Below, piece after piece: positions 5,023 to 35,611 of a DNA stretch of 64,000 nt. The stretch comes from Anthoceros angustus. Taxonomy: Eukaryota > Plantae > Anthocerotophyta. Where the stretch lies: assembly GCA_010909165.1 (NCBI GenBank), contig VJWM01000209.1, positions 62,001 to 126,000 of the forward strand, given 5' to 3'. Within the stretch, counting starts at the first letter, position 1; each line of letters opens with the position of its first letter. Below the pieces are notes generated by a model. It saw nothing but the letters and a program-made list of their open reading frames with translations, made no database searches and had not been told where the DNA came from. The position numbers and the translations under genes were made by a program.

Positions 5023-7258
5023 ATGGAAGTGACATTGGGTGAGATTGGAGTGGCGCTTGCAATGCGGTGCTAGCTGTGGCCTGGCCAGTGTGGAGGTACT
5101 GGGAGCGGGGGATGTGGGCGCCCAAGGGCTCAAGCAGCTGCCGGGGACCATGGGCTTCCTGCTGGGAGAGATGGAGCTGCTGGGCTACTTCAAGGTCGGG
5201 GATCCGGAGACATTCACGGCCAAGCGCTTTCGCAAGTATGGCGATGTGTTCAAGTCGCATGTGTTAGGAGTCCGTATGTGTTTTCAGGGCGCCGAGGCGG
5301 CCAAGCTCTTGCTCAATGGAGCACAAGCTGGTACAGGCGCACCAGTTCCTCCCGCGAGGCAGCTGGTGGGCAGGAGTCGCTCCTCAATGTACACGGCCCC
5401 ACGCACAAGTTCTATCGCAAAATTCTCAACGAATCTTCATGGGCGAAGGCATTAGGAAGTATCTGCCGGTGTCGGAGCAATCGGCTCTAGAGACCCTCAG
5501 TTCCTGGAACTGGGCGACGTCCCGTCATGAGACACGAGGGCAAGGAGTGCACAGAATTGGGCCACTCTTACCGTTTGTCTGCAATCTAATTGCAATGTTT
5601 GTGCAGAGCTCGTGATGTTTGCTAACTGGTAGTTGCTGACGGTGCGCAGTTCGCTTATCATGTGATCGTGGGACTGGTGCTGAGCTGGGGTCCTGGTTCA
5701 GTGCGTGACAGGAGCTTGGAGCTCACCAAACAGTGAGTACCAGCTTGATCACGGTGCCCATCAATCTTCCTGGATTCGCCTTCACAAGGCCATGCAGGTG
5801 GGAATTCGTTCAGGCCCAATTTGGAGCACAGGTGTCCAATTTCTCCCAGGGCTTGCAGGACACATTAAATCTAACAGTGCTAGTGGACTGGGCGTGCAGG
5901 CAAGAAAGGAGCTGGGTAAAATGTTCGACACCGAATTTGCGCTGAGAAGGAGCGGAAAATTTGTTCGCAGCGACCTGCTGAATGAAATGATGAAGGCAGT
6001 CGGACCCCGATTCTTCCAGCGACAAGCCTGCCCTGGACGACGAGCAGCTGAGGGACAATGTGCTCACCATGATCGTTGCTGGCTTTGAGACCACCACCAA
6101 CACACTCACCTGGCTTGCCAAGCTGCTGCATGAGAATCCCAGCGTCAAGGAGAAGCTGCTGGTGAGCCTGGCCTGGGGATATATCAAGACGTCGTCCATA
6201 GGAATCGAAATTGGTTTGGAACAGCTTGGATCCAAGCGAGCCCCACCTTGTTGTTTGGTTTTTCTGTCTGTTTAACTGTAGGCTGAGCATTTGGCTCTGA
6301 GAAGAAACAAACAAGCTGGAGAGCCACTGACATGGGCGGATCTCGGCCAACCGATGGCCTACACCTTGAAAGTGAGACTCGGATCCTCAACATTCTCCAA
6401 CCTAGTAGTGGCCCAATACTCACTGGAATCTGGCGCAAGCTAAGATCCATCTGTCTTGTCTCCTGTGTGCATGCAGGTGATCAACGAGGCACCTGAGTGT
6501 CTTCTATCGCTTTGTGGTTGCATCGACAGGTCAAGGAGGACTTTACATTCAACGGTATGTATGCTGCACCTGGCATTGGCAACCGTAAATATTCCTTCCC
6601 TACTCCAAGCGGGAGTCCTAACATGGGTCTGCTTGATTACTGGTATGATTTTCCCGAAGCTTTCTACCTGACACATGTGCCACCTGCAGGATACCACATT
6701 CCTAAAGGCTGGAACTTTGTGCTCGACACTCAAAACTTGCACCATAGTCCAGACATCTTCCAAGACCCAGAGATCTTCAATCCCTCTCGCTTCGATGTAA
6801 GAGCCTGATGCTTGAATTCAACACTAGAATCATTACAGACGTCGCCGAATCATAGACAACGAACAACATCTTGGGAGTTATCTTGTGACACTGCGTTCTG
6901 ATGCTACCAACAGGTGCCACCGAAGCCCTTCACCCTGCTGCCGTGGGAGGTGGAAGCAGATTGTGCCTTGGGAAGGAGCTGGCACTAATGAACATGAAAG
7001 TGATGTTGCATCACATGATGCTTAAATTCAGGTGAGTCCCCATAATTCTTCTGCAATAGCTCACAAGTCATTTACAGTGCCTCTCTACATGTATACTTCT
7101 TTGCTAACCGATGGGTGCCGACCCCGTGTTGAAACAGGTGGACAGTAGACAAGCCAGACACTGGCCTAGTCGTTTCAGGTCTGCCATACCCCAAAACCGG
7201 TGTCCCCATACGCATCGAGGCTGTCCAGGACTACTCGTCTGCCAACCGAGCTATGTAA
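5023..7258 (+). CDS. Cytochrome P450, CYP85 clan, copy A; 8 exons, frameshifted in this assembly
   Basis: N-terminal hydrophobic anchor and LPGTMGF(P)LLGE. I-helix AGFETT (about 6078-6095), ExxR (EALR, about 6486), PSRF (about 6781) and heme motif read as WGGGSRLCLG with one missing G (about 6940-6972). GT-AG introns; approximate exons 5023-5543, 5650-5797, 5900-6161, 6282-6371, 6477-6556, 6690-6796, 6914-7031, 7138-7258. Confidence 0.93.
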
Positions 7259-7794
7259 TACATCAGAGCTTGGCGTAAACCTTGGGATAAAGTGATCCTG
7301 CCGTCGAAGGTTATGGGTCCGACAAGGTCTCCAACTGTAGTGCTTCAATATTTTATCCAGTGGATTTTAGTAAAGGTGAGGTAGGACGTCTGGGACTATG
7401 GATCTTTCTGACAGTCCATTCCAGTTTTAGCAAAAGGTGAGGTACGGACGTCTGCGTCCCTCCGGCAGTCCCATTGCTGTCGCACGTTTCGACGGCACTG
7501 TATTCAGAGAAAGTTGGAGATTCTTTGAGAAAAAGCTGCAGCATCTGCTTGCGACTTGACAAGTTCATACTTCATACTGAGTCAGCAATGTGCGAAAGCA
7601 GGAGGGATTGCTGCAGCATGGCATTCTTGAAATTGCATTCCGTCCTTCAAAGAATCGCAGGCAGCCATGGACGTGACGAGGGGCCTAACACGCGTATGAT
7701 GAATCCTGCGTGGCGAGGAGATGACCAATTTGCTAATGTATCTGAAATATCTCCATGTATCTCAAATACGTGCGGAGATCCAGCCGCGTGCTAC

Positions 7795-9359
7795 GCTTAG
7801 CCGTAGAAATCAGGTGGCCAGGTGCGGGGCCCGCTGACATTGGTGTACTTCATGGTCATGTCTCGCACATTGCCATTAACATCCATGACGTAGAGATCGT
7901 CTATACGGTCCAGCAATTCACCACCGGCCGGGTCCTTGTCCGAGGCATTTTTGTCTTTTGGTTTGTATATGATTACACTTGTCTAGCATGAAGTCATCGC
8001 AGATGCTTTGGTTTAGTGGTCGGATCAGCCCCTGCACCGAAGCGATCCGGTCTTAATCCGTCTAGTCTGCATTTTGTGTGTCGGACACCCTTATGTCTAG
8101 TTTGCATTTTGTGTGTCGGACACCCTATGTCTGGACGCGATAACCCTTGTTGGGTTTGGCGTCACCAGGTTGCCCTTGTTGGGTCCCTTGTTGGTTGTTG
8201 CCCTTGTTGGGTCCCTTGTTGGGTTTGGCGTCACCAGGTTGCCCTTGTTGGGTCTGGCGTGACCTGGGTTGCCCGGCATACAGAGGTATATACATATGAA
8301 TGCATACAGAGGTATACATATTCATATGATTGAGAGGGTATGGACTACATGGTCCTGGGTTGCCCGGTGGCATACAGAGGTATATACATATGAATGCATA
8401 TAGAGGTATATACATATTCTGCCATAGGACCGATGCAAAGCCGAGGCATGAGGCCGGCATGCGGGCATGCCTCTCTTTCTTTCCGGCGTCTCCCTTTCCG
8501 GCAACGGGCGTCCGTCGTCGCTCCTCTCAACGGCTCCTTCCACCCCTCCTCTCAACGGCTCCCGTCCGCGCTCCTTTCAACGCCGTCCAACGCCGTCCTT
8601 CCGCACTGCTCACTCGTATGTGGTCCCAACTTGTTCCCACATCCCCTATTCTCGTTCCTAATGCGCTCCAAAACGAACGTTTCAAGTATCATAACCCACT
8701 TCTAATGCGGCTCAGTTCAGAGGAAGCTTGACTTGGGTACGATCGAGCAAGCAAGCGGTAGTCTCTCCAATATCGTGATGTCAGCGGAATGGAACATTTG
8801 CCTCACTCACTCAAGTGCAGACACCGGAGCCAGCATCTTCACCAAGGAGCCTCACACTCAAGTGCAGACACCGGAGCCCAGCATCTTCACCAAGGAGCAT
8901 TTGTCATGGGCTGTGGGCGATCATCGAGGGAAGATCAAAATGCACATGAATGTGAAGCGCGCTTACATTCCTTCTGACCGTGTAGGTGATTTTATTGCAG
9001 GTGAGAAAACATAATCTATTACAGTATGTTCAAAATGAACAGGACAGTGGGAGTTCGTGATCGAGTGCTTGGTGAAGAGGTTGAGACCCGAGACAGTTGA
9101 GACCCGAGACGGGTGACCATGAGGAGGAGCGCGGACGGAGCCGTTAAGAGGACGACGGATGCCCGTTGCCGGAAAGGAGACGCCAGAAAGAAAGAGAGGC
9201 ATGCCCGCATGTCGGCCTCATGCCTCTCGGCTTTGCATCGTGGCGCCACACGGGCGATACGAATGGCAGGGCTCATTAAGTTTGCGTAAGCCTTAGGCGA
9301 CGGGGTCATGCACGAGGGAGTCAGCGGGCCCCGCACCTGGCCACCTGATTTTCACGTCT
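7795..9359. mobile_element. About 1.57 kb insertion specific to unit A; probable non-autonomous DNA transposon (possibly MULE-derived)
   Basis: Absent at the matching site in unit B (about 31040). It has a perfect 32-bp inverted repeat (7807-7838 / 9320-9351) and is flanked by the 13-bp direct repeat AGCCGCGTGCTAC (7782-7794, 9360-9372). The internal peptide KRAYIPSDRVGDFIAGE (about 8955-9005) resembles the N-terminus of plant MULE-derived SWIM proteins; this is a weak, recalled similarity. Confidence 0.65.
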
Positions 9360-10073
9360 AGCCGCGTGCTACTGTCTCTGAAATATATGCGGAGCTCGAG
9401 CCGCGTGCCAACGTGTTCTAGACTCTGAAATTATGTGCCGAGCTCCAACCGCGTGCCGAATTTGACATATGTGCGGAGGTACAGCCGCGTGGGCCAGGTC
9501 TCTTATTATTTAAACCCGCACAGTTCCTGCAGATGCTCGTATAAATGTGAGGCCCGCAAATCTGAGGCCCGCTTTTACTGACCGGCGGTTGCGTCCCATG
9601 TATGAAATTCACCAGCCTGCTTGTCTGCTGCCTCGCGTCGCAGCCCCGGCGAACATCGCATGTTTCGAGGGTGAGGCCTGTCAGTCTTGGGCTGGTCAGG
9701 CGTCGTCTCGTCAGCCTCTCGACGCTCTGACATGCCTGGTAATGCCACTGGAGGCCACAAGTTTTGCGACCCCGGTGGATGTAAACCAAAATCACGAGTC
9801 TGTCCAATGCCCATCACCCACGCATACCGGCGGTCAGAATGTGACAAAAGTTTTCAACTACGATTCGGCCAGGGTCACTTTGACTTGTCGTACGAAAAGC
9901 GTTTCATGACATCACGAGGACGTAAAAGCGTCCAGTGTCAGTGAAGTGCAGCTTGCGTGCATGTAATACAGAATTCTGTGTGTAAGGTAACGTACAAGTG
10001 AAGCTTGCATGCCTTGTAGACTTTGGGCCATAATATTATAGAAGTCATAGAATACCCCGTCCCTTAGGCTATA

Positions 10074-13000
10074 ATGCCCCGCCGTTTAATCATTCCGGCG
10101 AAGTCAGTTGTGTTGCCCAAGTGCTCACGGTCATCAGGAATGGCTGCAGCGACTGTCACAAGAGCAGCAGCTGCAGCTGCTTCTCCGACCAGCTCAAGGT
10201 GGTGTCCGCAACGCCAACGCGGAGTGGCCAAGATACTCGGGGAGCATCGATATCGTCCAGTCGATCAAGAGAAGAGGATGCAAGGCTTCCAAGGCGGCAC
10301 ATGTCGAGGCTTGGCAGGTGCATGCGTCCGCTGCGCATGGGCTTGGGCCGCTGCAAGCTCAGGCCACAGATTTACAAGCTGCAGAGCGCGAAGTGGAGGT
10401 GCTGGAGCGGCTGTGCCACTTCCGGATGATCGATATGATCCGGATGCAGATGCGGATGCGGAGATCCAGGAGTCGATCCGAAGCATCCAGAGTATGCTGC
10501 GGTCACTCGGGGACGGGGCCATCTCCGGAGCCCCTACGACGCGGCCTGGGTGGCCATGGTGCCGGCGGCGGGCGGCGTCCTGGGCCGCACTTCCCGAGGC
10601 GCTGGAGTGGGTGGTGCGTTCGCAGCTGCCGGAAGGCTGCTGGGCGGGCGACGCGCACCTCTTTAACGTCTACGATCGCCTGGTGGCGACTCTGGCGTGC
10701 GTGGTAGCGCTGCGAACATGGAGCGTGCATCCCGATGCCGTGCGGAAAGGGTGCGCCTTCATCCGGCAGCATATGCACCAGGTGGATTCCGGAACCACAT
10801 CCACAGAACCGTGGGGTTCGAGATGGTGTTCCCGGCTATGCTGGAGCGGGCGAGCGCGCTGGAGCTGGATCTGCCGTACGACGCGCCCGCCAGCACCCTT
10901 CTGCGGGAGCGGGAGCGCAAGCTGAAGCAGATTCCGGTGGAGTTGGTGCAGTCAGCCCACGACGCTGCTGGCGTCGCTGGAAGGGATGGACGCCCTGAAG
11001 GGCTTCGACTGGGACAAGATCCGGAGGCTGCAGTCGCCGGCGGGCCACATGCTCACCTCTCCGGCCTCCACCGCCTGCTTGTACATGCACACCGGGGACA
11101 GCAAGGCGCTGCAGTACCTCACCCTGCTGGTGGAGACGACGGGGTGTTATCCCCAACCACTCGCCTGTCGACATCTTCGAGCGGCTGTGGATCGTGGACA
11201 GGCTGCAGCGTCTGGGAATCGCGCGCTACTTCAAGCCCGAGATCAAGGACATCCTGGACTTCGCCTTCCAGCGGTGGACGGAACGGGGCCTGAGCTGGGC
11301 CACCGATTGCAATGTCACCGACCTGGACGACACCAGCATGGGCTTTCGCTTGCTGCGCCAGCATGGCTATCCTGTCTCTGCAGGTGCCCTCTGTACACTC
11401 ACGCATGTATCTTGGCTTGCATCCTTGGCTTGCTCCCGCTTATCACACTTGTGGTGACTGTGTCTGTCTACTACTCATGTGATGCAGATGTGTTCAAGGC
11501 ATTCTGCAAGGAGACCACTCGTGCTGGGTCGACCACGGGTGCGACCTGGACACCGATGTCACCCCATGTTCAATCTGCACCGCGCGTCCGAGATGCGCTT
11601 CCCACACGAGGACTTGCTGGACAAGGCCTGGGAGTACACGCGCTTTCATCTGGGAGAAACAGCGACAGCCGCAGCTATCGGACAGGTGGGTTGTGTCCAA
11701 AGATCTCCGAGGAGAGCTGGAGTACGCTTTGAGCTGCCCTGGTACGCCAGTATGCCTCGCTTTGAGACCAGGGCTTATATCGACCACTACGGCCCTGGCG
11801 ACGTGTGGATCGCCAAGAGCCTCTACAGGTGAGTACCTTCCGTCTCACATCGCTTTCACGCATTGGCGAGCTCCTGACAGCTGAGAAATCAATTGGGCAT
11901 CCATGTAACTGCATCCATCTCTTTCCAAATTGTACAGGATGTATGGCGTCTGCAATTCAACATTCCTATCCCTTGCAAAAGCAGACTTCAACAAATTGCA
12001 AACCATGTACCGCGCGGAGCTGGAGGCATTGAAGGAGTACGTGCAGTTCAAGTTTCCCATCATCCGATCCTCACTAATAGCCACAATGTCTGAAGAGGAA
12101 AGACTTAAGCTTGCCTATTAACTTCGCTTCCAATTCGCTCTGTGCACCGGTAGATGGGTATCAGAATGTCGCTTCGACCGTCTCCCATTTGCTCGCCACG
12201 ACAGGGTGATTCCAGGCTTCCGTGCGCGGCTGCCACCTCCTTCGAACCGGAGATGGCTGCGGTGCGCAGGCCAGGACCCAACTCATGCTCCTGGCCACCA
12301 TACTCGATTACGATTACACCACCCTGTCAGGAGTTCCCCAGGACGAGCTCGACCGGTTCCAGGCTGCCACCAAAGGTACCGTTAGCCGGTCATCCACTCG
12401 TAGCCATGCCACTGTCACTCGCCGACCGGACCGGCTGTCCCTTCTCACTGCCTGCAATTGCTTGCTTCAACATCTGTGTCCTTCTGCAGCTGGGACCCGT
12501 CCATGATCGACCACACCAACCACAGGCAGCGCATCGTTTTCATGGGCATCTTCGACACCATCGTCGAGATAGCCGACAAAGCATCCAAGGAGCAGGGCCG
12601 CGATGTCAGCAGGCATGTAATCGCATCGGTGAGTGACTTCTCTGGGGCTCTACTGTCCGCATCCCTAACAGCCTAGTGCATCCTCACTTGCTTGTTCAAG
12701 CATTGGCTCACCTACCCCCACGCGCAGTGGCAACGCTACGCCGAATGCGTGAGCATCCGAGCCAAGTGGAAGCGGGAAGACATCATTCCCACCTGGAACC
12801 AATTCATCCCAGTCGGCGCAATCTGCATCAGCGCGGAGCTCTGCAGTTTGGGACCTGGCTTCTTGATACCCGGTGTGGGGTGAGCGAGGAGGCCATCAAC
12901 TCGGAATACTACGACCTCCATGAAGTCTCCATGGTAGCGCGCCTCTTGAACGACCTCAGATCGTACCAGGTACGCTAATATGTAGTGAAGGTGAGATTGC

Positions 13001-13345
13001 ACATGTCTGCATACATCACACAGCATACATGCATATGACCCGTCCCATGTCCAATCCTGAATTGCCACAGAAGGGGATATCGGAAGTGAACAGTATGGTT
13101 GTTCATATGAGAGAGTACCCGGAGAAGAGCGAGGAGGAAGCGGACCACGACATCCGAGCTATAGTGGAATCAACATGATACAGCTGGTGCAACATGTCTT
13201 CACTCCATCGGCTGTGCCCACCCTGCAAACTCGTCTTTTGCACAATGCCATTGTCGCATATTACCTCTACGCAGACAACGACGGCTGGTCCTCCCCTCAG
13301 CCAAGATGCAGCACCACTTTAACCAGCTTCTTTTCAACCGTGTGA
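10074..13345 (+). CDS. Plant-type diterpene synthase (gamma-beta-alpha, CPS/KS-like), copy A; frameshifted in this assembly
   Basis: Ser/Ala/Arg-rich transit-like N-terminus, GAISGAY(D)AAWVAMVP, QLPEGCW, TLACVVAL, TTLLASLEG, PNHSPVDIFERLWIVDRLQRLGI and class II DLDD (11320-11331). Also PWYASMPRFETRAYI, DVWIAKSLYR followed by an intron, and RLLNDLRSY. The C-terminus reads LFQPV-stop after frame correction. Confidence 0.93.
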
Positions 13346-13489
13346 TTTGATGTACTTCAGCCACCTCTATCAACTTCACTGCAGAAGTCGTTACCACAAG
13401 TAGTAACCTAAGAAACCTGTGTACATTTTGAAATCTCACAGTTCAGCAAGTGTGTGCGTGCAAACCCTTTCCTGCCAACCTCTTTTTCT

Positions 13490-14790
13490 GCAGACGGAAC
13501 CATATTCCATGTGTAGCGTCCCACGCTACCTGCCCTGTACACCTGCACAAGTTCCTCCGCCACGTGGCAAGCCACCATGTACCGACTCAGCGAGGATTTT
13601 CAACAGGCCTGACAAGGCCTGCATTTGCTCGTCCACCAAGCCTTCCATCTCCTGCATATCATAGAGGTTCCCTTGAATGACCGATTTTTGCAGCCAGGGT
13701 GTGCCGGACATCTGGTACCCTGTCAGGCACAGCCTGCGAGTAATATATGTCACAAAAGTTTATCTGCAGTCGGGAACCATATCCCATGTAGCGTCCCAAG
13801 GTACCTGCTCTGTACACCTGCACAAGCTCCTGCGCCACACGTGGCGAGCCACCATGTACCAACGCAGCGAGCATTTTCAACAGGCCTGACAAGGCTTCAT
13901 TTGGTTCCGTTGAATGACCGATATGTTGCAGCCAGGGTGCCGGACATCTGATACCCTGTCAGGCACAGACTTCAGTATATATATGACACAATGTTATAAT
14001 AGGGAATGCACAAAAGTTTCCATCTCCCCACACCTCATACCTCTGGACCATTAGGTTGCTCAGCATTACCATGCAGCTTCCAGCTCGAGTAGACATCACG
14101 CGCATTATTCAGTAACGAGAGCGAGTACCTTGCAATCCGCTCATCTCCTACCACGGACTCTTTTGTGGCTCCTGAAGAGCAGGCAGCAACATCAGCCAAC
14201 AGAGTTTCAAGTGTTTCTAACAAAAGCACCGGGCCTGTAGGTGGTGGGAGACTGTACCAGTCAATGACAGCTTCAACCTTGTCTCAACATCACGGATCTA
14301 TTGTACCAGCAATCCAGGTGTGTCAAGCGCATAGATGCTTGGATGTCTACCAACTTGGCACGACGCATGTTACCCACCTATGTCAATTGCCAGCAGGCAA
14401 AGGCTATCACCACTCGCCTCAGGCTGGAAGATGATGACATATATCAAGTGCTGGTAAGGACATATCCCAGACCTGGGAGCCTGATCTGTTTCGGTGACTC
14501 CAGGCAGAGGTCCAAGTTGCTTTTTCAAATGCTCCTGCAGTAGACAAAAGCTACGATCTCAGATAGACAAGGCTTGGCCTCCAAAGGCTCCAATGACTCT
14601 CCTGATGCTATATGACTCTCATGTGCAACAAACAGCGCTAGCAACAAACAGTACCTGGAAACCCCGATCTTGTGAGCTGACCCATCTTGTTCAGAATAGC
14701 TGACTTGCGCACGCCCTGGCGACATCAGCAGCAAGGTGGGCTCTTTCACTGGCTCTCTTTCAGCCAATCCCTTGCTTTCACGCATCAGCG
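13490..14790 (-). pseudogene. Decayed RbgA/YlqF-family (SIN2/DAR GTPase 2-like) GTPase, central and C-terminal exons, last exon tandemly duplicated
   Basis: EPTLLLM..V(R)KSAILN (degenerate G1, about 14695-14740), GPLPGVT (G2, 14493-14513), PSIYALDTPG (G3, 14313-14324), SVVGDERIARY..LLN and the C-terminal VYRAGTLGRYTW. In-frame stops are present (e.g. LLVQ*). The family call is from recalled motif context. Confidence 0.7.
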
Positions 14791-14799
14791 CCTGAAAGC

Positions 14800-15150
14800 T
14801 GAGAAATCAACAATCCATGTGACTGCATCCATCAAGGGTCCACCAAGCTTTCCATCTCCTGCAGGTCATCCAGGTTCCCATTGAATGACCGATATGTTGC
14901 AGCCAGGGTGTGCCGTACATCCGAGACCCTGCCAGGCACAGCCAGCGAGCATGACATAATATTAGAGGAACAAGACTGAACGAAAGTTTCCATCTCCCCA
15001 CACCAACTTGGAGAAGGCTTCATACCTTTGGACCGTCAGGTTGCTCAGCGTTCCCATCCAGCTTCCACCTTGAGTAAACATGGCGCGTATTGAGAAGCGA
15101 GCAAGTACCTCGCAATCCGCTCTTCTCCTACAACCGAGTCTTCTATGGTT
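14800..15150 (-). pseudogene. Second, diverged fragment of the same GTPase gene
   Basis: GTIEDSVVG(E)ERIARYLLASLNTR..WKLDGNAEQPDGPK and DVRHTLAATYRSFNGNLDDLQEMESLVD repeat the exons at 13900-14190 with substitutions. Confidence 0.65.
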
Positions 15151-15356
15151 CCTGAGGATTAAGCAGCAACATCAGCCAAATAGAGTTTCATATGGTTCTA
15201 ACGATGACACCAGTCCTGTAGGTGGTGGGGAGGCTGCAATACCAGTCAACTACCATCTTTAGGGTGGAACACTAATCTTACCTGGCCCAAACAGGCAATG
15301 GCTAGCCAAGACCCTTATTAGGGCCTGCGGAGAGAGGCACATGTCTTCAGAGCTTC

Positions 15357-16370: not shown

Positions 16371-16779
16371 CCCAAACGACATTGTGATCCATCACACCGG
16401 TCACTTCCTGTGACGCGTTGTGCGAGATCAAGCCCTTCCCCAAGGACTCAACAAAACTGTCACGTCCCACATGCCTGCCAGAGTGTCGAGAAGGGTTGAT
16501 TTGCCGGAGAAGGCCCCATGATGTAGCACGTCATTCCTTATTTAGGCTTTCGTCTGTGACGCCTTCGTGTGATGATGGCATTGTACTTCTCGGTGTGGTG
16601 ATGCCGTCTGTGCTTCTTGGTGTGATCCTCCCAAACGTCAAACATTTTGAATCTGGTAATCGTCATCTCTCCAGGGAATCGAGACTTGTGATGGTGATCC
16701 CAATTGCAACCGGAGGGATCCAGGTGTCACAGTGTGTGTGAGGCAGCAGAGCCTCCGCGAAATTTGGCAGCCTTGAAAC

Positions 16780-17170
16780 GGGTCTGCGCGATGTGGTAAC
16801 CACCATGGTGGTTCCCGCCGGAGATCCAGAGAAGAAATCGCACGAGAACGAAAGGTGTGAGATCCGTAGCCTGGATCAGCTCATCCCCAACGTGTACGTG
16901 CCTTCTCCTGCTGTTCGATAAAACCCCGAGATCGGGATTGGCGGGACTGGTGGAGAGCTCAAACAGTCGCTGGCTAGGGTGCTGGTGCTCTTCTATCCCA
17001 TGGCGGGCAGGGTGGTGGAGAGGGCGGGCCAGCCGCCGCATCTGGTGTGCAACAATGCCGGTGCCGTCTTCACCTCCGCGCACGTGGACGCTCCCATGAG
17101 CCAAGTGTGTGGAGTCGGCATTCACTTCCAGCCGGTGCCACAAATCCAAGGGACATTGATGAGGCACAAA
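16780..17170 (+). pseudogene. BAHD acyltransferase, N-terminal fragment
   Basis: SLDQLIPNVYV, LKQSLARVLVLFYPMAGR (16958-17012) and LVCNNAGAVFTSA, typical of the BAHD N-terminal region. No HxxxD or DFGWG was found before the copia insertion. Confidence 0.7.
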
Positions 17171-23300: not shown

Positions 23301-25810
23301 TAGCTAGGCTGGTCATCACATAATCTCTGCGTGAAAAGGGCAAAAGCGAACACTTGGTTATTCTATGTGAGCAGAGTCGGTTTGTGATTTACAACAAACC
23401 ACTTCACGATCACATTTTCTTCACGATTAAGTATATTTCTGCTGGTCCTAATTAAGTATAGTGAATGAATCACCACCGTTTGTGAATAAAGTTGAACTTC
23501 AAGTTTCTTTAGGCTCTGTCTCCTAAGGCTCTATCTCTTTAGGCTGTGTTGAAGAAACATTTGTGAATGGTGTTTCAAAAAACTAGACAATATCGTTGAA
23601 GTACACACGTAGTGTGGTTTTTTTAATACAAAATATGCTCAAATAAACCAAATAATATCATTGGAAAAACATGTATTTTATTTTCGAAAACACATATATT
23701 TTTGAAGAAACATGGATTGGGATTTATGAAATTTAAAAGACAGCTTGAAGACATACTTGAACAAACATGCATTATGTTGTAAAAACATGTATAGTGTTTG
23801 AGGAAACAAGCATTGTGTTTCAAAACCATAAAAGAATTGCTTGAAGAAACATTATAGTTAGAAGAAATATTACATTTTTCAAGTCTTGCCATTGTGCAGT
23901 GAAATTGATGTTGGGTATAGGCATGTAAATCCCCTATGTCACTGCAAAAGAAAGGACTGAAGATTCAAGCTAGGATGCTTGAGCGTGGCTTAGTCTTTGA
24001 ATTGGTGCCATTAATTTCAACTTAAATGAAGGAGAAGGCATAGCAATCTCACACTTAACAACGGATGAAGGAATTACACCAACTACAGTCCACCCCCTAA
24101 TTGGGACTGGTTGAGTGCCTTTAGAGGTCCCATTAAGGGAGGTGTCGATTGTATTTTCCCTATTTAAAAATAATAAAAATGTTATAAAATTTAAAACAAA
24201 TCAAAATACCCAAAAAAGAAAAAATAAAAAGAGTATATATGAGTATTTAGGTATTTAATTAAGTATATAACCTGATTATGAAACTAACCTAAACTAACAT
24301 AATTTCCTTTAAGCTCGGGAGGTTCTTTGTATCTTGGTTTGGGTCTTCATCTTCAAGGTTGAAGAAATCTGCGATAATAGGATCTTCATTCCACGTTAAG
24401 TGCACGCACTCAAGCAGAAGCTCCAAATATCAATAGACCACAGGTGCCACAAAATTTTTGGTTTGTGCCCAAGAAGAAGTCCATCTGCTCAAAAAAGGGC
24501 CAAGAGCCTGGTGTCCCCTTGATACATGCTTTACCTTTTCTCCTTCATCGTATTTCTTCTTCAGCGCCTCTACTTTCTACTTGCACTGCTTCCAACGTAC
24601 GGTCCAAGTACAGTATGGTGAAACCAGGCTGCAAATTTCATGCGAATGCTTCACCTCCAAATTGCCCTTGTTCACTTTGAAATATTTCTCTTCAACATCA
24701 AAATTAGTTTTTGGGTGCCTTCATCTGTTCAAGTCGTCTTCTCCAAACCAACTGTGGTGCATTATTCCACATGACCGTGGGAAAATGCATGCCGTAATGC
24801 AAAGATCCGCCATGGCTTCCTTTTCAAGGCTAGCTAGGGCCGTGACTTGTGTGGCTTTGTGAATCTCAATGTGTATTATTTAATACAATACATAACATCT
24901 TGGGGCGACCAATATGCTGCACGGGATGAAGCACGTGAGGGCAATGTATCAGTAAACACTTCGACTACGAGGTCTACCGTAGTCGTAGTGGGGAATGCTA
25001 TATAAAGGCACAACGTCTTTTTATAAACTAGCTAGGCTGGTCATCACATAATCTACGCAGTGAAAAGGGCAAAACGAACAGCAGCTTGGTTATTCTATGT
25101 GAACAGGCCATCAGTTTCGCAGTTACAAGCAAACCACTTCACGATCACATTTTCTTCCTGATTAAGTATATTTCCTGCTGGTCCTAATTAAGTATAGTGA
25201 ATGAATCACCACCGTTTGTGAATAAAGTTGAACTTCAAGTTTCTTTAGGCTCTGTCTCCTAAGGCTCTATCTCTTTAGGCTGTGTTGAAGAAACATTTGT
25301 GAATGGTGTTTCAAAAAACTAGACAATATCGTTGAAGTACACACGTAGTGTGGTTTTTTTAATACAAAATATGCTCAAATAAACCAAATAATATCGCGTG
25401 GAAAAACATGTATTTTATTTTCGAAAACACATATATTTTTTGAAGAAACATGGATTGGGATTTATGAAATTTAAAAGACAGCTTGAAGACATACTTGAAC
25501 AAACATGCATTATGTTGTAAAAACATGTATAGTGTTTGAGGAAACAAGCATTGTGTTTCAAAACCATAAAAGAATTGCTTGAAGAAACATTATAGTTAGA
25601 AGAAATATTACATTTTTCAAGTCTTGCCATTGTGCAATGAAATTGATGTTGGGTATAGGCATGTAAATCCCCTATGTCACTGCAAAAGAAAGGACTGAAG
25701 ATTCAAGCTAGGATGCTTGAGCGTGGCTTACTGCTGAATTGGTGCCATTAATTTCAACTTAAATGAAGGCATAGCAATCTCACACTTAGCACAACCTGGA
25801 TGAAGGAATT

Positions 25811-26316
25811 ACACCCCTAATTGGGACTGGTTGAGTGCCTTTAGAGGTCCCATTAAGGGAGGTGTCGATTGTATTTTCCCTATTTAAAAATAATAAAAAT
25901 GTTATAAAATTTAAAACAAATCAAAATACCCAAAGAAAATTTAAATTTTGATTGATAGGTTTCACTAAAAATAACTTTTACCAGTTCTTTATATAGTTTT
26001 TGAAAGCTAGCACTCTCTCTAGCGCATCAAAAACCTCTACCTATCATAAAGGAAAAAGCTTAGCTTAAGAGTCTTCAATCACACCTAAAAGTCTATAAAG
26101 CTCTGAAATAATGGATTCTTTTTCTTTTTTAGATTTTTAGTAAAAAATAGAAATCCCATTTAGGAGGTGAAACTAACATGAATGTATGCTTCAAAAGGTC
26201 CCAATTATCATTTAGGAAAAGTCCCATTTGTTACATTATAAACTAAAGGGAGTAGGATGGGAGGTCCCATTTAGAGAGGAATCCCATTTATAGAATTCCC
26301 AATTAGGGGCCGACTG
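25811..26316. mobile_element. Unit-B copy of the Tc1/mariner-like MITE
   Basis: Same interior as 3778-4304, with ends CCCCTAATTGGGA and TCCCAATTAGGGGCCGACTG. A further truncated copy starts at about 24085. Confidence 0.7.
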
Positions 26317-27014
26317 TGCTTGTACTTGCACCTGGTGCAAGTGCTAAGAACTCAGCTCAATCCATTTTCGTTGTCATCTCCATTCAAGTGTGTGACCACG
26401 CAGGAATTGGCGCACAAAGCTGATAACGGGCTTATCACGGGCCCAGGTAGAAACATTTAAATATGATTTACGAAACAGGAAACACCAAAGGAAGCTTGGA
26501 TAAATGAAAACCGTTTTGGTTTTAAAACCGCACGCGACACAGGTACAGTATTCACATGGAGGCGAGTCTTCATCGTACATGCCACATGCACGGACATGGA
26601 GGCAACGACCGTATACTGACCGCATACGGGATGGAGGTGGGGCCGACGGAGGCTGCCGGATGGTCAGGCCAATCTGCTTTTAAAGAATTCCTTGCAGCGC
26701 TGCTACTGGGGAGGGACTGCAGAAGCCTCTGCGTGCTTGAAATGCATTCCAGTCATTGAAAGTATCGCAGGGCAGTCACGGACGTGGTATTGGTTGTGGG
26801 GATTGGGTGGCGCTTGCAGCTACGAGAGGATAAGCCGGTCGCACGCCTTAACTTGCCTTCACTTCACAGCATTGATGCTGAGCATTGTGTGACCTCCACA
26901 GCTCATGAAGCTGAGCATTGTGTGAAGTGGGAGGAGTGCAGCTGCCTCTGCCTCTGCCTCTGCCTCTGCATTCTTGAGGTTGAATGCCGTTGTTGAAATA
27001 ATCGGAGGGCAGCC

Positions 27015-30000
27015 ATGGAAGTGACATTGGGTGTGGAGATTGGAGTGGCGCTTGCAATTGCGGTGCTAGCTGTGGCCTGGCCAGTGTGGAGGTACTGGGA
27101 GCGGAGGGGATGTGGGCGCCCAAGGGCTCGAAGCAGCTGCCGGGGACCATGGGCTTCCCCCTGCTGGGAGAGACGATGGAGCTGCTGGGCTACTTCAAGG
27201 TTGGGGATCCGGAGACATTCACGGCCAAGCGCTTTCGCAAGTATGGCGATGTGTTCAAGTCGCACGTGTTAGGGAGTCCGTATGTGTTTTTCACGGGCGT
27301 CGAGGCGGCCAAGCTCTTGCTCTCAATGGAGCACAAGCTGGTACAGGCGCACCAGTTCCTCCCCGCGAGGCAGTTGGTGGGCAAGGAGTCGCTCCTCAAT
27401 GTGCACGGCCCCACGCACAAGTTCTATCGCAAAATTCTCAACGAATCCTTCATGGGCGAAGGCATTAGGAAGTATCTGCCGGTGTCGGAGCAATCGGCTC
27501 TAGAGACCCTCAGTTCCTGGAACTGGGCGACGTCCCCGTCATGAGACACGACATGGGCAAGGTGCGTGCACCAGAATTGGGCCACTCTTACCGTTTGTCT
27601 GCAATCTAATTGCAATGTTTGTGCAGAGCTCGTGATGTTTGCTAACTGGTAGTTGCTGACGGTGCGCAGTTCGCTTATCATGTGATCGTGGGACTGGTGC
27701 TGAGCTGGGGTCCTGGTTCAGTGCGTGACAGGAGCTTGGAGCTCACCAAAACAGTGAGTACCAGCTTGTCACGGTGCCCATCAATCTTCCTGGATTCGCC
27801 TTTCACAAGGCCATGCAGGTGGGAATTCGTTCAGGCCCAATTTGGAGCACAGGTGTCCAATTTCTCCCAGGGCTTGCAATGGGCCGCAATAAATCTAACA
27901 GTGCAAGTGGATTGGGCGTGCAGGCAAGAAAGGAGCTGGGTAAAATGTTCGACACCGAATTTGCGCTGAGAAGGAGCGGAAAATTTGTTCGCAGCGACCT
28001 GCTGAACGAAATGATGAAGGCAGTCGACCCCGATTCTTCCAGCGACAAGCCTGCCCTGGACGACGAGCAGCTGAGGGACAATGTGCTCACCATGATCGTT
28101 GCTGGCTCTAGAGACCCTCAGTTCCTGGAAACTGGGCGACGTCCCCGTCATGAGACACGACATGGGCAAGGTGCGTGCACCAGGAATGGGCCACTCTTAC
28201 CGTTTGTCTGCAATCTAATTGCAATGTTTGTGCAGAGCTCGTGATGTTTGCTAACTGGTAGTTGCTGACGGTGCGCAGTTCGCTTATCATGTGATCGTGG
28301 GACTGGTGCTGAGCTGGGGTCCTGGTTCAGTGCGTGACAGGAGCTTGGAGCTCACCAAAACAGTGAGTACCAGCTTGATCACGGTGCCCATCAATCTTCC
28401 TGGATTCGCCTTTCACAAGGCCATGCAGGTGGGAATTCACCAGGCCCAATTTGGAGCACAGGTGTCCAATTTCTCCCAGGGCTTGCAATGGGCACATAAA
28501 TCTAACAGTGCAAGTGGACTGGGCGTGCAGGCAAGAAAGGAGCTGGGTAAAATGTTCGACACCGAATTTGCGCTGAGAAGGAGCGGAAAATTTGTTCGCA
28601 GCGACCTGCTGAACGAAATGATGAAGGCAGTCGACCCCGATTCTTCAAGCGACAAGCCTGCCCTGGACGACGAGCAGCTGAGGGACAATGTGCTCACCAT
28701 GATCGTTGCTGGCTCTAGAGACCCTCAGTTCCTGGAAACTGGGCGACGTCCCCGTCATGAGACACGACATGGGCAAGGTGCGTGCACCAGAATGGGCCAC
28801 TCTTACCGTTTGTCTGCAATCTAATTGCAATGTTTGTGCAGAGCTCGTGATGTTTGCTAACTGGTAGTTGCTGACGGTGCGCAGTTCGCTTATCATGTGA
28901 TCGTGGGACTGGTGCTGAGCTGGGGTCCTGGTTCAGTGCGTGACAGGAGCTTGGAGCTCACCAAAACAGTGAGTACCAGCTTGTCACGGTGCCCATCAAT
29001 CTTCCTGGATTCGCCTTTCACAAGGCCATGCAGGTGGGAATTCGTTCAGGCCCAATTTGGAGCACAGGTGTCCAATTTCTCCCAGGGCTTGCAATGGGCA
29101 CATAAATCTAACAGTGCAAGTGGACTGGGCGTGCAGGCAAGAAAGGAGCTGGGTAAAATGTTCGACACCGAATTTGCGCTGAGAAGGAGCGGAAGTTGTT
29201 CGCAGCGACCTGCTGAACGAAATGATGAAGGCAGTCGACCCCGATTCTTCCAGCGACAAGCCTGCCCTGGACGACGAGCAGCTGAGGGACAATGTGCTCA
29301 CCATGATCGTTGCTGGCTTTGAGACCACCACCAACACACTCACCTGGCTTGCCAAGCTGCTGCATGAGAATCCCAGCGTCAAGGAGAAGCTGCTGGTGAG
29401 CCTGGCCCTGGGGATATATCACAGACGTCGTCCATAGGAATCGAAATTGGTTTGGAACAGCTTGGATCCAAGCGAGCCCAACCTTGTTGTTTGGTTTTCT
29501 GTCTGTTTAACTGTAGGCTGAGCATTTGGCTCTGAGAAGAAACAAACAAGCTGGAGAGCACTGACATGGGCGGATCTCGGCCAACCGATGGCCTACACCT
29601 TGAAAGTGAGACTCGGATCCTCAACATTCTCCAACCTAGTAGTGGCCCAATACTCACTGGAATCTGGCGTAAGCTAAGATCCATCTGTCTTGTCTCCTGT
29701 GTGCATGCAGGTGATCAACGAGGCACTCCGAGTGTCTTCTATCGCTTTCTGGTTGCATCGACAGGTCAAGGAGGACTTTACATTCAACGGTATGTATGCT
29801 GCACCTGGCATTGGCAACCGTAAATATTCCTTCCCTACTCCAAGCGGGGAGTCCTAACATGGGTCACAGTGCTTGATTACTGGTATGATTTTCCCGAAGC
29901 TTTCTCGCTACCTGACACTCATGTGCCACCTGCAGGATACCACATTCCTAAAGGCTGGAACTTTGTGCTCGACACTCAAAACTTGCACCATAGTCCAGAC

Positions 30001-30503
30001 ATCTTCCAAGACCCAGAGATCTTCAATCCCTCTCGCTTCGATGTAAGAGCTTGATGCTTGAATTCAACACTAGAATCATTACAGACGTCGCCGAATCATA
30101 GACAACGAACAACATCTTGGGAGTTATCTTGTGACACTGCGTTCTGATGCTACCAACAGGTGCCACCGAAGCCCTTCACCCTGCTGCCGTGGGAGGTGGA
30201 AGCAGATTGTGCCTTGGGAAGGAGCTGGCACTAATGAACATGAAAGTGATGTTGCATCACATGATGCTTAAATTCAGGTGAGTCCCCATAATTCTTCTGC
30301 AATAGCTCACAAGTCATTACAGTGCCTCTCTACATGTATACTTCTTTGCTAACCGATGGGTGCCGACCCCGTGTTGAAACAGGTGGACAGTAGACAAGCC
30401 AGACACTGGCCTAGTCGTTTCAGGTCTGCCATACCCCAAAACCGGTGTCCCCATACGCATCGAGGCTGTCCAGGACTACTCGTCTGCCAACCGAGCTATG
30501 TAA
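27015..30503 (+). CDS. Cytochrome P450, CYP85 clan, copy B; interrupted by an internal triplication (possible pseudogene)
   Basis: MEVTLGVEIGVALAIAVLAVAWPVW, LPGTMGFPLLGET, FKSHVLGSP, AGFETT (29312-29329), PSRF, heme motif at about 30187-30218 and stop at 30501-30503. Exon 1 ends at 27561, exon 2 is 27670-27818 and exon 3 starts at 27924. Confidence 0.9.
27499..29317 (+). repeat. Three tandem copies of a roughly 607-bp segment inside P450 copy B
   Basis: Copies at 27499-28106, 28107-28713 and 28714-29317. The junction GTTGCTGGC|TCTAGAGACC is seen twice. Confidence 0.95.
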
Positions 30504-31370
30504 TACATCAGAGCTTGGCGTAAACCTTGGGATAAAGTGATCCTGCCGTCGAAGGTTATGGGTCCGACAAGGTCTCCAACTGTAGTGCTTCAATATTTTA
30601 TCCAGTGGATTTTAGTAAAAGGTGAGGTAGGACGTCTGGGACTATGGATCTTTCTGACAGTCCATTCCAGTTTTAGCAAAAGGTGAGGTACGGACGTCTG
30701 CGTCCCTCTGGCAGTCCATTGCTGTCGCACGTTTCGACGGCACTGTATTCAGAAAAGTTGGAGATTCTTTGAGAAAAAGCTGCAGCATCTGCTTGCGACT
30801 TGACAAGTTCATACTTCATACTGGAGTCAGCAATGTGCGAAAGCAGGAGGGATTGCTGCAGCATGGCATTCTTGAAATTGCATTCCGTCCTTCAAAGAAT
30901 CGCAGGGCAGCCATGGACGTGACGAGGGGCCTAACACGCGTATGATGAATCCTGCGTGGCGAGGAGATGACCAATTTGCTAATGTATCTGAAATATCTCC
31001 ATGTATCTCAAATACGTGCGGAGATCCAGCCGCGTGCTACTGTCTCTGAAATATATGCGGAGCTCGAGCCGCGTGTCAACGTGTTTCAGACTCTTTGAAA
31101 TTATGTGCCGAGCTCCTGCCGCGTGCCCAAGAATTTGACATATGTGCGGAGGTCCAGCCGCGTGGGCCGGGTCTCTTATTATTTAAACCCGGACAGTTCC
31201 TGCAGATGCTCGTATAAATCTGAGGCCCGCAAATCCAGGCCCGCAAATCTGGGGCCCGCAAATTTGAGGCCCGCTTTTTACTGACCGGCGGTTGCAGTCC
31301 CATGGTATGAAATTCACCAGCCTGCTTGTCTGCTGCCTCGCGTCGCTAGCCCCGGCGAACATGGCGTGTT

Positions 31371-31766
31371 TCGCCTAAGGCTAACGCAAACTTAATGAGC
31401 CCTGCCATTCGTACCGCCCGTGTGGCCACGCACCCCGATGCAAACCCGAGACGCATGAGGCCGGCATGCGCGGGCATGCCTCTCTTTCTTGAGTTCGTGA
31501 TCGAGTGCTTGGTGAACAGGTTGAGACCAGAGAGTGACCAGTTGGGTGACCATGAGAGGAGCGCGGACGGGAGCCGTTGAGACGAGGGTGGAGGGAGCCG
31601 TTGAGAGGAGCGACGACGGACGCCCCGTTGCCGGAAAGGGAGACGCCGGAAAGAAACAGGCATGCCCGCATGCCGGCCTCATGCCTCTCGGCTTTGCATC
31701 GGGGTGCGTGGCCACACGGGCGGTACGAATGGCAGGGCTCATTAAGTTTGCGTTAGCCTTAAGCGA
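31371..31766. mobile_element. Fold-back MITE (about 395 bp, about 115-bp terminal inverted arms) specific to unit B, upstream of the terpene synthase
   Basis: The left arm TCGCCTAAGGCTAACGCAAACTTAATGAGCCCTGCC... is the reverse complement of the right arm ending ...GTTTGCGTTAGCCTTAAGCGA. It is absent at the matching unit A site (about 9668). Arms of the same family lie inside the unit A insertion (about 8430-8545 and 9050-9300). Confidence 0.8.
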
Positions 31767-32226
31767 CGGGGAGGCATGTCAGTCTTCAGCTGGTCAGGCG
31801 TCGTCAGCCTCTCGACGCTCTGACATGCCTGGCAATGCCACTGGAGGCTACACGTGTTTGCGACCCCCGGTGGATGTAAAACCAAAATCACGAGTCTGTC
31901 CAATGCCCATCACCCACGCATACACCGGCGGTCGAATGTGACACAACCTAAGAGTTTTCAACCACGATTCGGCCAGAGTGACTTTGACTGGTGGTACGAA
32001 AAAGCGTTTCATGACATCACAAGGACGTAAAAGCGTCCAGTGTCAGTGAAGTGCAGCTTGCGTGCCTGTAATACAGAATTCTGTGTAAGGTAACGTACAA
32101 GTGCAGCTTGCGTGCCTGTAATACAGAATTCTGTGTAAGGTAACGTACAAGTGCAGCTTGCATGCCTTGTAGACTTTGGGCCATAATATTATAGAAGTCC
32201 TAGAATTCCCCGTCCCTTAGGCTATA

Positions 32227-35200
32227 ATGCCCCGCCGTTTTATCATTCCGGCGAAGTCAGTTGTGTTGCCCAACTGCTCACGGTCATCAGGAATGGCTGC
32301 AGCGACTGTCACAAGAGCACCAGCTGCAGCAGCGACTGTCACAAGAGCACCAGCTGCAGCAGCGACTGTCACAAGAGCACCAGCTGCAGCAGCGACTGTC
32401 ACAAGAGCACCAGCTGCAGCTGCTTCTTCGACCAGCTCAAGGTGGTGTCCGCAACGCCAACGCGGAGTGGCCAAGATACTCGGGGGGAGCATCGATATCG
32501 TCCAGTCGATCAAGAGAAGTAGAGGATGCAAGGCTTCCAAGGCGGCACATGTCGAGGCTTGGCAGGTGCATGCGTCCGCTGCGCATGGGCTTGGGCCGCT
32601 GCAAGCTCAGGCCACAGATTTACAAGCTGCAGAGCGCGAAGTGGAGGTGCTGGAGCGGGCTGTGCCACTTCCGGATGATCGATATGATCCGGATGCAGAT
32701 GCGGATGCGGAGATCCAGGAGTCGATCCGAAGCATCCAGAGTATGCTGCGGTCACTCGGGGACGGGGCCATCTCCGGAGCCTACGACGCGGCCTGGGTGG
32801 CCATGGTGCCGGCGGCGGGCGGCGTCCGGGGCCACTTCCCGAGGCGCTGGAGTGGGTGGTGCGTTCGCAGCTGCCCGAAGGCTGCTGGGCGGGCGACGCG
32901 CACCTCTTTAACGTCTACGATCGCCTGGTGGCGACTCTGGCGTGCGTGGTAGCGCTGCGAACATGGAGCGTGCATCCCGATGCCGTGCGGAAAGGGTGCG
33001 CCTTCATCCGGCAGCATATGCACCACGTGGATTCCGAGAACCACATCCACAGAACCGTGGGGTTCGAGATGGTGTTCCGGCTATGCTGGAGCGGGCGAGC
33101 GCGCTGGAGCTGGATCTGCCGTACGACGCGCCCGCAACCAGCACCCTTCTGCGGGAGCGGAGCGCAAGCTGAAGCAGATTCCGGTGGAGTTGGTGCAGTC
33201 GCAGCCCACGACGCTGCTGGCGTCGCTGGAAGGGATGGACGCCCTGAAGGGCTTCGACTGGGACAAGATCCGGAGGCTGCAGTCGCCGGCGGGCCACATG
33301 CTCACCTCTCCGGCCTCCACCGCCTGCTTGTACATGCACACCGGGGACAGCAAGGCGCTGCAGTACCTCACCCTGCTGGTGGAGACGACGGGGGGTGTTA
33401 TCCCCAACCACTCGCCTGTCGACATCTTCGAGCGGCTGTGGATCGTGGACAGGCTGCAGCGCTTGGGTATCGCGCGCTACTTCAAGCCCGAGATCAAGGA
33501 CATCCTGGACTTCGCCTTCCAGCGGTGGACGGAACGGGGCCTGAGCTGGGCCACCGATTGCAATGTCACCGACCTGGACGACACCAGCATGGGATTTCGC
33601 TTGCTGCGCCAGCACGGCTATCCTGTCTCTGCAGGTGCCCTCTGTACATTCACGCATGTATCTTGACTTGCATCCTTGGGCTTGTTCCCGCTTATCGCAC
33701 TTGTGGTGACACTGTATGCCTACTACTCATGTGATGCAGAGGTGTTCAAGGGTTTCTGCAAGGGAGACCACTTCTCGTGCTGGGTCGACCACGGGTGCGA
33801 CCTGGACACCGACGTCACCCCCATGTTCAATCTGCACCGCGCGTCCGAGATGCGCTTCCCACACGAGGACTTGCTGGACAAGGCCTGGGAGTACACGCGC
33901 TTTCATCTGGGAGAAACAGCGACAGCCGCAGCTGTCGGACAGGTGGGTTGTGTCCAAAGATCTCCGAGGAGAGCTGGAGTACGCTTTGAGCTGCCCTGGT
34001 ACGCCAGTATGCCTCGCTTTGAGACCAGGGCTTATATCGACCACTACGGCCCTGGCGACGTGTGGATCGCCAAGAGCCTCTACAGGTGAGTACCTTCCGT
34101 CTCACATCGCTTTCACGCATTGGCGAGCTCCTGACAGCTGAGAAATCAATTGGGCATCCATGTAACTGCATCCATCTCTTTCCAAATTGTACAGGATGTA
34201 TGGCGTCTGCAATTCAACATTCCTATCCCTTGCAAAAGCAGACTTCAACAAATTGCAAACCATGTACCGCGCGGAGCTGGGCATTGAAGGAGTACGTGCA
34301 GTTCAAGTTTCCCATCATCCGATCCTCACTAATAGCCACAATGTCTGAAGAGGAAAGACTTAAGCTTGCCTATTAACTTCGCTTCCAATTCGCTCTGTGC
34401 ACCCGTAGATGGGTATCAGAATGTCGCTTCGACCGTCTCCCATTTGCTCGCCACGACAGGGTGATTCCAGGCTTCCCGTGCGCGGCTGCCACCTCCTTCG
34501 AGCCGGAGATGTCTGCGGTGCGCAGGGCTAGGACCCAACTCATGCTCCTGGCCACCATACTCGACGATTACACCACCCTGTCAGGAGTTCCCCAGGACGA
34601 GCTCGACCGTTTCCAGGCTGCCACGAAAAGGTACCGTTGCTAGCCGGTCATCCACTCGTAGCCATGCCACTGTCACTCGCCGACCGGACCGGCTGTCCTT
34701 CTCACTGCCTGCAATTGCTTGCTTCAACACATCTGTGTCCTTCTGCAGCTGGGACCCGTCCATGATCGACCACACCAACCACAGGCAGCGCATCGTTTTC
34801 ATGGGCATCTTCGACACCATCGTCGAGATAGCCGACAAAGCATCCAAGGAGCAGGGCCGCGATGTCAGCAGGCATGTAATCGCATCGGTGAGTGACTTCT
34901 CTCTGGGGCTCTACTGTCCGCATCCCTAACAGCCTAGTGCATCCTCACTTGCTTGTTCAAGCATTGGCTCACCTACCCCCACGCGCAGTGGCAACGCTAC
35001 GCCGAATGCGTGAGCATCCGAGCCAAGTGGAAGCGGAAGACATCATTCCCACCTGGAACCAATTCATCCCAGTCGGCGCAATCTGCATCAGCGCGGAGCT
35101 CTGCAGTTTGGGACCTGGCTTCTTGATACCCGGTGTGGGGTGAGCGAGGAGGCCATCAACTCGGAATACTACGACCTCCACATGAAAGTCTCCATGGTAG

Positions 35201-35611
35201 CGCGCCTCTTGAACGACCTCAGATCGTACCAGGTACGCTAATATGTAGTGAAGGTGAGATTGCACATGTCTGCATACATCACACAGCATACATGCATATG
35301 ACCCGTCCCATGTCCAATCCTGGAATTGCCACAGAAGGGGATATCGAAGTGAACAGTATGGTTGTTCATATGAGAGAGTACCCGGAGAAGAGCGAGGAGG
35401 AAGCGGACCACGACATCCGAGCTATAGTGGAATCCAACATGAAACAGCTGGTGCAGCATGTCTTCACTCCATCGGCCGTGCCCACACCCTGCAAACACGT
35501 CTTTTTGCACAATGCCATTGTCGCATATTACCTCTACGCAGACAACGACGGCTGGACCTCCCTCAGCCAAGATGCAGCACCACTTTAACCAGCTTCTTTT
35601 CAACCGTGTGA
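32227..35611 (+). CDS. Plant-type diterpene synthase, copy B; frameshifted in this assembly
   Basis: GAISGAYDAAWVAMVP, TTLLASLEG (LAS 33217-33225), GGVIPNHSPVD (33403-33414), DLDD (33571-33582), ILDDYTT (34563-34577), RLLNDLRSY and a C-terminal helix region ending LFQPV-stop after frame correction. Approximate introns follow GYPVSA (33633), SLYR (34085) and EALK. Confidence 0.93.
32301..32420 (+). repeat. 30-bp unit x4, in frame (ATVTRAPAAA) in the predicted transit peptide of terpene synthase B
   Basis: AGCGACTGTCACAAGAGCACCAGCTGCAGC occurs four times. Copy A has a single unit. Confidence 0.95.

Follow-up and report, generated by a model that had tools for sequence, protein, structure and literature searches.

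A 64,000-nucleotide stretch of the Anthoceros angustus genome assembly (contig VJWM01000209.1, positions 62,001 to 126,000; hereafter the window, with coordinates counted from its first base) contains, twice over, a cytochrome P450 gene followed on the same strand by a diterpene synthase gene. This arrangement raises the question of whether the two pairs are real and functional paralogues, and whether they amount to a biosynthetic gene cluster. We consider it fairly probable that a block of DNA was recently duplicated in tandem here, that the block carries real synthase paralogues, both of which stayed under purifying selection, and that the frameshifts in the genes are mostly assembly errors. 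As judged by sequence comparison, the recently duplicated pair of a P450 and a class II diterpene synthase is a reasonable candidate for specialised diterpenoid metabolism; that the two enzymes are functionally linked is a hypothesis that draws only on their adjacency, their co-duplication and the precedent of other terpene synthase (TPS)-P450 (CYP) pairs.

Self-BLAST of the window recovered collinear matches between 1-14422 (copy A) and 19632-36739 (copy B) at 94-98% identity. All four genes lie on the plus strand, and the spacer between P450 and synthase measures 2880 bp in copy A and 1789 bp in copy B. A previous sequence-only reading of this stretch had described a co-oriented pair duplicated as a block, with the window starting inside the repeated unit. 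Pfam, PDB and self-BLAST results agree with its coordinates and spacers, the collinear copies bear out the block duplication, and the window does begin within the unit, in a copia element common to both copies. Since both units share this element, the copia insertion predates the duplication. The units and the four genes are listed here.

1-14422, plus strand: duplicated unit, copy A, delimited by self-BLAST and cut by the window start inside a copia element, with copia integrase-like open reading frames (ORFs)
5023-7259, plus strand: P450, copy A; eight exons, many small frame-breaking indels, no 607-bp triplication
10140-13345, plus strand: diterpene synthase, copy A; its substitution alleles are those of public DNA and RNA contigs
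19632-36739, plus strand: duplicated unit, copy B, with private internal duplications at 22146-25937 and 27500-29320
27015-30503, plus strand: P450, copy B; motifs LPGTMGFPLLGET, AGFETT (29312-29329), EALR (29720), PSRF (30028) and GGGSRLCLG (30192-30218)
32293-35611, plus strand: diterpene synthase, copy B; seven exons, the first of about 1.34 kb, placed from RNA joints and by comparison with homologues and a related contig (L001, below)

In the history that we favour, the recent tandem duplication would have affected transposon-rich hornwort DNA, in a block some 20-22 kb long. The block would carry a copia element and a CYP85-clan-like P450, followed on the same strand, after 1.8-2.9 kb, by a TPS-c-type synthase. 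Synonymous divergence between the copies is about 2%.

Whether the differences between the copies reflect evolution or assembly depends on the kind of difference considered. Small indel events (about 212) outnumber substitutions (about 98), which is the reverse of natural decay; most of the indels are therefore probably long-read assembly errors that survived polishing, because duplicated DNA is not polishable by short reads. They are mostly of one or two bases, many fall in homopolymers, and the frames of all four genes are broken in the window sequence. We aligned public contigs of one sample over 29650-35649, one set probably short-read DNA (X1) and the other RNA (X2). At 33076, 33158 and 35345 both sets contain bases that the window lacks, and a further insertion occurs in the DNA contigs at 35559; the synthase frames are rejoined by those at 33076 and 33158 (TVGFEMVF to PAMLERAS and DAPA... 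to ERKLKQ). Two bases missing at the end of exon 3 in the copy B synthase are likewise present in the RNA, and every checkable synthase frameshift is contradicted by the public contigs. We also used as an outgroup a related 3.9-kb Logan contig (L001) that is 79% identical, and in 17 of 21 cases it contains the bases that are absent from one copy.

The substitutions tell another story. Among the 23 coding substitutions between the two synthases, 14 are synonymous and nine nonsynonymous (P = 4.4e-4 against a neutral value of 0.74), and this synonymous bias means that they are not random errors. L001 shares its base with copy B at 18 sites and with copy A at 13, and this two-way polarisation places derived changes in both lineages. 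For the P450 copies, the sites usable in exon 1 and exon 3 give five synonymous and one or two nonsynonymous differences. The copies are also structurally distinct, copy B having a 30-bp leader repeat, a rearranged spacer, a 1.7-2.1 kb duplication and a 607-bp triplication. Taken together, these sequence comparisons favour real paralogues, with substitutions that look real. The sequence-only reading had suggested, as unproven, true paralogues rather than a doubly assembled region, citing substitutions and private insertions; this suggestion and the substitutions are upheld by the synonymous bias and the polarisation against the outgroup, and most of the small indels look instead like assembly errors.

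One local pattern within the synthase block stands apart: 15 of its 38 substitutions between copies A and B fall in 220 bp around intron 1 (33594-33813), a patch that looks like gene conversion from a third, more diverged paralogue.

The synthase family assignment comes from several searches. Stop-free exon pieces of copy B matched the Pfam domains PF01397 and then PF03936 on successive pieces, in the expected order, and exon pieces aligned to solved structures in the PDB (ent-CPS, syn-CPS and SmMDS) over residues about 11-300, a stretch that begins at the N-terminus and takes in the gamma domain. The pieces make up the gamma-beta-alpha three-domain architecture, with a total model of about 860-890 residues. 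Pfam searches of the raw long ORFs of copy A returned no synthase domain, because the frame switches at indels. The closest sequence among 1.8 billion representatives was P0001, the 445-residue first-exon ORF of a relative, with 88% identity over the core; all other synthase matches were at or below about 56% identity, the next best including proteins of Sphagnum and Ceratopteris, Selaginella SmMDS and Cryptomeria CPS/LPS. The ratio of nonsynonymous to synonymous substitution rates (dN/dS) between the synthase and the relative is 0.155. We also built a tree of 40 rows and 309 columns, in which the synthase row is a frame-patched partial translation. It placed the synthase and P0001 on a long stem (0.74) within a group that includes CPS from seed plants and TPS-c-like proteins from mosses, ferns and lycophytes, while SmMDS/SmCPSKSL1 and Cryptomeria TPS-d3 fell elsewhere. 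The Shimodaira-Hasegawa-like approximate likelihood ratio support was only 88; the synthase thus appears, with weak support, to group with TPS-c-like proteins.

No hornwort proteins came up in word-based protein searches whose queries were P0001, the first P450 exon and the exon with the class II site, under a length filter that excludes full-length relatives of such exon-sized queries. Looking for synteny in other hornworts turned up L001 as the sole close relative; no P450 was found in its 1.4 kb upstream of the synthase, the contig being too short to decide synteny.

The following features of the copy B synthase bear on its chemistry.

32299-32420, plus strand: perfect in-frame repeat of a 30-bp unit, 4.1 copies (AATVTRAPAA), in the presumed transit peptide or N-terminal leader
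33217-33582, plus strand: class II site, with LAS (33217-33225), PNH (33403-33411) and DLDD (33571-33582), all three also in P0001
34563-34577, plus strand: first class I metal motif, DDYTT, aligned to DDIYD of solved synthases and identical in L001
35212-35232, plus strand: second class I metal motif by local alignment, NDLRSYQ, continued by KG across the intron
33630-33734, about 34087-34194, 34293-34408, about 34632-34749, 34887-34987 and 35233-35334, plus strand: introns

The DxDD motif of class II cyclisation is intact as DLDD in copy B, in copy A (from 11320) and in P0001. In place of the LHS/PNV dyad motifs of ent-CPS, both copies and P0001 carry LAS/PNH. The class I side is different, since neither a DDxxD nor an NSE/DTE motif, as expected of a bifunctional class II/class I synthase, is found: NDLRSYQKG stands against NDIQTYKIE or NDIQGFKRE, with the glutamate lost and a four-residue gap relative to homologues, and a PDB search with the NSE/DTE exon gave no match. 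The motifs indicate that the synthase is probably class II only, and because its class I motifs are degenerate its product is probably a diphosphate, not directly oxidisable by a P450. We therefore predict from the sequence a class II cyclisation of geranylgeranyl diphosphate (GGPP) to a diphosphate other than ent-copalyl diphosphate (ent-CPP), with no class I step of its own; the enzyme would release a bicyclic prenyl diphosphate, which a P450 could oxidise only after the action of another enzyme, either a class I synthase or a phosphatase. A His-to-Ala change in Arabidopsis CPS yields hydroxylated CPP.

The altered dyad can be set beside published enzymes. The passages of Jia et al. 2022 (PMC9169658) on class II sites tie LHS/PNV to ent-CPP formation and altered LHS/PNV to other products, for example kolavenyl or hydroxylated diphosphates, and they describe a hornwort TPS-c radiation with other products. 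The present synthase resembles these hornwort and liverwort TPS-c enzymes beyond CPS/KS in apparently belonging to a hornwort-restricted TPS-c-like lineage in which DxDD is kept and LHS/PNV altered; LAS/PNH, however, is not among the cases that those passages describe, and genome position and P450 neighbours fall outside their coverage. The third-position histidine of P-x-H is shared with the LYS/PCH sites of gymnosperm and lycophyte (+)-CPP enzymes, as PCH (same passages of PMC9169658), but the partner tyrosine of those sites is an alanine in the hornwort synthase, so that there is no Tyr-His dyad. The LYS/PCH enzymes belong, moreover, to TPS-d3/h and are bifunctional, unlike the probably monofunctional hornwort synthase.

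Three side observations concern the synthase. The 30-bp leader repeat is present as one unit in copy A and in shorter versions in the DNA contigs. A diverged synthase paralogue is seen in an RNA contig aligned at 33194-33593, with 26 differences in 400 nucleotides and a depth of 38.5, and a diverged synthase paralogue is also seen in a DNA contig aligned at 35412-35619, with 17 differences in 208 nucleotides and a depth of 7.

Both gene families are transcribed in one sample. The synthase RNA joints, at depths of 5-8, are all GT-AG (33629 to 33735, 34280 to 34409 with the window corrected, and 34886 to 34988), and the synthase RNA contig carries the copy-A alleles. The P450 RNA joints, at depths of 85-99, run from 29788 to 29935, from 30042 to 30157 and from 30274 to 30380, the second having the ends GT..AA and the others GT-AG. 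Co-expression of P450 and synthase is not judgeable from one RNA sample kept as contigs.

The P450 is less well preserved in the window sequence, and its features in copy B are the following.

27500-29320, plus strand: 607-bp unit, repeated three times in tandem inside the P450 and single in copy A; it spans the last part of exon 1, exon 2 and exon 3 as far as the I-helix
29789-29934, 30043-30156 and 30275-30379, plus strand: RNA-supported introns

Stop-free exon pieces match PF00067 in Pfam, and the P450 fold motifs AGFETT, EALR, PSRF and (P)WGGGSRLCLG are present, the haem motif being in frame only with the extra G of the RNA. The best matches of exon 1 were CYP120A1 (52 bits), CYP725A4, the taxadiene 5-alpha-hydroxylase (36), and CYP90B1 (31.5), ahead of CYP51, which fits a resemblance to CYP85-clan enzymes, the clan proposed in the sequence-only reading, as exon 1 similarity and not as a phylogeny. 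Exon 1 searched in the protein atlas gave a generic P450 result only, and the I-helix exon searched against PDB matched BM3 only, which is uninformative. The P450 belongs to a multi-copy family, as the contig depth and the many short contigs attest.

Beside these genes lies a relic of a P450 5' end (GCATTCTTGA...GGGCAGCCATGGACGTGAC), at 30866-30925 and in copy A at about 7620-7680, some 360 bp past each P450 stop, to which an abundant RNA contig aligned; it hints at an older tandem P450 copy, or at a paralogue with such a start.

Several observations weigh against the reading of real paralogues with mostly misassembled frames, and several of them concern the P450. Both P450 copies read GGG (30188-30190, in copy A about 6942-6944), five codons before the haem cysteine, versus GGGG in the RNA, whose additional G falls at 30190. 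The extra G is absent from the public DNA contigs too, so that this haem-exon frameshift, common to both copies, may be real. The 607-bp triplication, if real, breaks P450 copy B, its junction (GCTGGCT joined to CTAGAGACC) being out of frame with microhomology GGCTCTAGAGACC / GGCTTTGAGACC. In exon 6, 4 of 108 positions of the abundant P450 RNA contig disagree with both copies, and the transcript may for that reason come from another paralogue. Across 33147-34628 the public DNA contigs carry A-type synthase alleles only, and they show no clear rise in depth where A equals B, which is not decisive since minor variants are dropped from contigs; the copy number of the block is unproven. Finally, ORF reading and Pfam found neither a class I nor a GGPP synthase in the window, and no dehydrogenase or further tailoring gene.

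These observations can be read as decay, in which both P450s, and perhaps synthase B, would be true pseudogenes and the RNA would come from intact paralogues elsewhere. The G that is missing from A, B and the DNA contigs and present in the RNA, the out-of-frame triplication and the exon 6 differences of the P450 transcript are what such a history would leave. Diverged synthase paralogues do exist, one of them expressed at higher contig depth, and transposons and gene fragments fill the surrounding DNA. Against it stand the bias of A/B substitutions to synonymous sites, the spliced synthase RNA with copy-A alleles and the contradiction of the checkable synthase frameshifts by the contigs. We regard general decay as possible and on the doubtful side.

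A more ambitious reading is that of a working diterpenoid gene pair or cluster, in which the P450 would oxidise what the neighbouring synthase makes, with output raised by amplification of the block. The genes are co-oriented, close and duplicated together, both families are transcribed in the same sample, and the non-ent-CPS dyad points to specialised metabolism. A moss momilactone cluster offers a precedent. The degenerate class I motifs, however, mean that the product is probably a diphosphate, and there is no nearby class I partner; it is doubtful that either P450 copy is intact; and the RNA is a single sample, with contig depths of 85-99 for the P450 versus 5-8 for the synthase and a P450 contig that may be that of a paralogue. 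We hold this reading to be unlikely as it stands. We would give similarly slim chances to a hornwort-specific, tandemly amplified module in which the class II cyclase, whose LAS/PNH dyad would be one not described before, the CYP85-clan P450 and an unlinked class I enzyme make a new labdane-related diterpenoid, hydroxylated or rearranged.

The word cluster, which the sequence-only reading had used, overstates the locus. Only two enzyme classes are present, the flanks are transposons and gene fragments, and the window falls short of the at least three non-homologous adjacent pathway genes that define a cluster. The momilactone cluster of the moss Calohypnum plumiforme, which that reading mentioned, does exist and comprises CpMS, CpCYP970A14, CpDTC1/HpDTC1 and CpCYP964A1 (PMC10140866). 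Like the hornwort locus, it comes from a bryophyte and has a labdane-type diterpene synthase beside P450 genes (PMC10140866), but the moss synthase is bifunctional and gives an olefin oxidisable by P450s, whereas the hornwort synthase is probably class II only. The moss cluster, with its four genes, brings together three enzyme classes and makes a proven product, and the hornwort pair has two classes and is known from sequence. A momilactone-like pathway was considered for the hornwort locus and rejected, the synthase being neither bifunctional nor closely related. Seed-plant TPS-CYP pairs, such as those of rice, share with the hornwort locus the pairing of a synthase with a P450 and local tandem amplification. 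In the labdane-related clusters of rice, class II and class I activities reside in separate synthases, several CYPs and dehydrogenases accompany them, and the genes are co-regulated; all this goes beyond what the hornwort locus shows. TPS-CYP pairs and a moss diterpenoid cluster are already known, and our literature search brought up no report of a terpenoid gene cluster from a hornwort.

An assembly artefact, in which one locus or two strains or haplotypes would have been assembled twice in tandem, is quite improbable: the region is visibly noisy, the independent DNA contigs hold only copy-A synthase alleles and the depth is similar in A-specific and shared parts, but the synonymous bias and two-way polarisation of the substitutions speak against it, as do the B-private spacer 31046-31334, which the DNA sample with the A-type synthase alleles also contains, free of substitutions, the lack of any run of N between the copies, and the haploidy of the hornwort vegetative plant. 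Contigs reach a depth of 27-30 over the genes, against about 8 for the B-private spacer, values that are suggestive and not interpretable as copy number.

If true, the module of cyclase and P450 would give hornworts, whose diterpenoid chemistry and genes are almost unexplored, their first described biosynthetic gene pair or cluster. The apparently constrained, expressed class II cyclase with its unusual base dyad would be a cheap and well-defined target for a GGPP assay in Escherichia coli, and the adjoining P450 is a ready candidate partner. The locus also carries a caution for annotation: duplicated regions of this genome probably keep many one- or two-base assembly errors, and 'broken' genes in duplicated regions should not be called pseudogenes without read support.

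The surroundings of the two pairs consist of the following elements, and only retroelements lie past copy B.

1-700, minus strand: copia counterpart in unit A, inside which the window begins
14423-19631, no strand assigned: inter-copy stretch, from Pfam hits and ORF reading
15361-16033, minus strand: ABCG-type transporter fragment (Pfam ABC_tran below cut-off; ORF reading)
16742-17423, plus strand: N-terminal fragment of a BAHD acyltransferase (Pfam Transferase), ending at copia
17728-19480, minus strand: copia reverse transcriptase half (RVT_2), within the inter-copy stretch
17728-20335, minus strand: copia element with RVT_2 and an integrase SH3-like domain, straddling the start of unit B

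Under a simple tandem duplication the unit would measure about 22 kb (14423-36739) and open with the ABCG fragment, the BAHD fragment and copia. The ABCG-type piece begins in the signature/Walker B region and runs on to where the membrane domain starts. Both this piece and the BAHD one were considered as cluster members and rejected as fragments. The internal 1.7-2.1 kb duplication of copy B, at 22146-25937, includes stretches that are 100% identical, and its counterpart in copy A is single (about 2190-3924). Just 3' of each synthase there is a tandem pair of 277-280 bp units, at 13480-13963 and 35751-36237.

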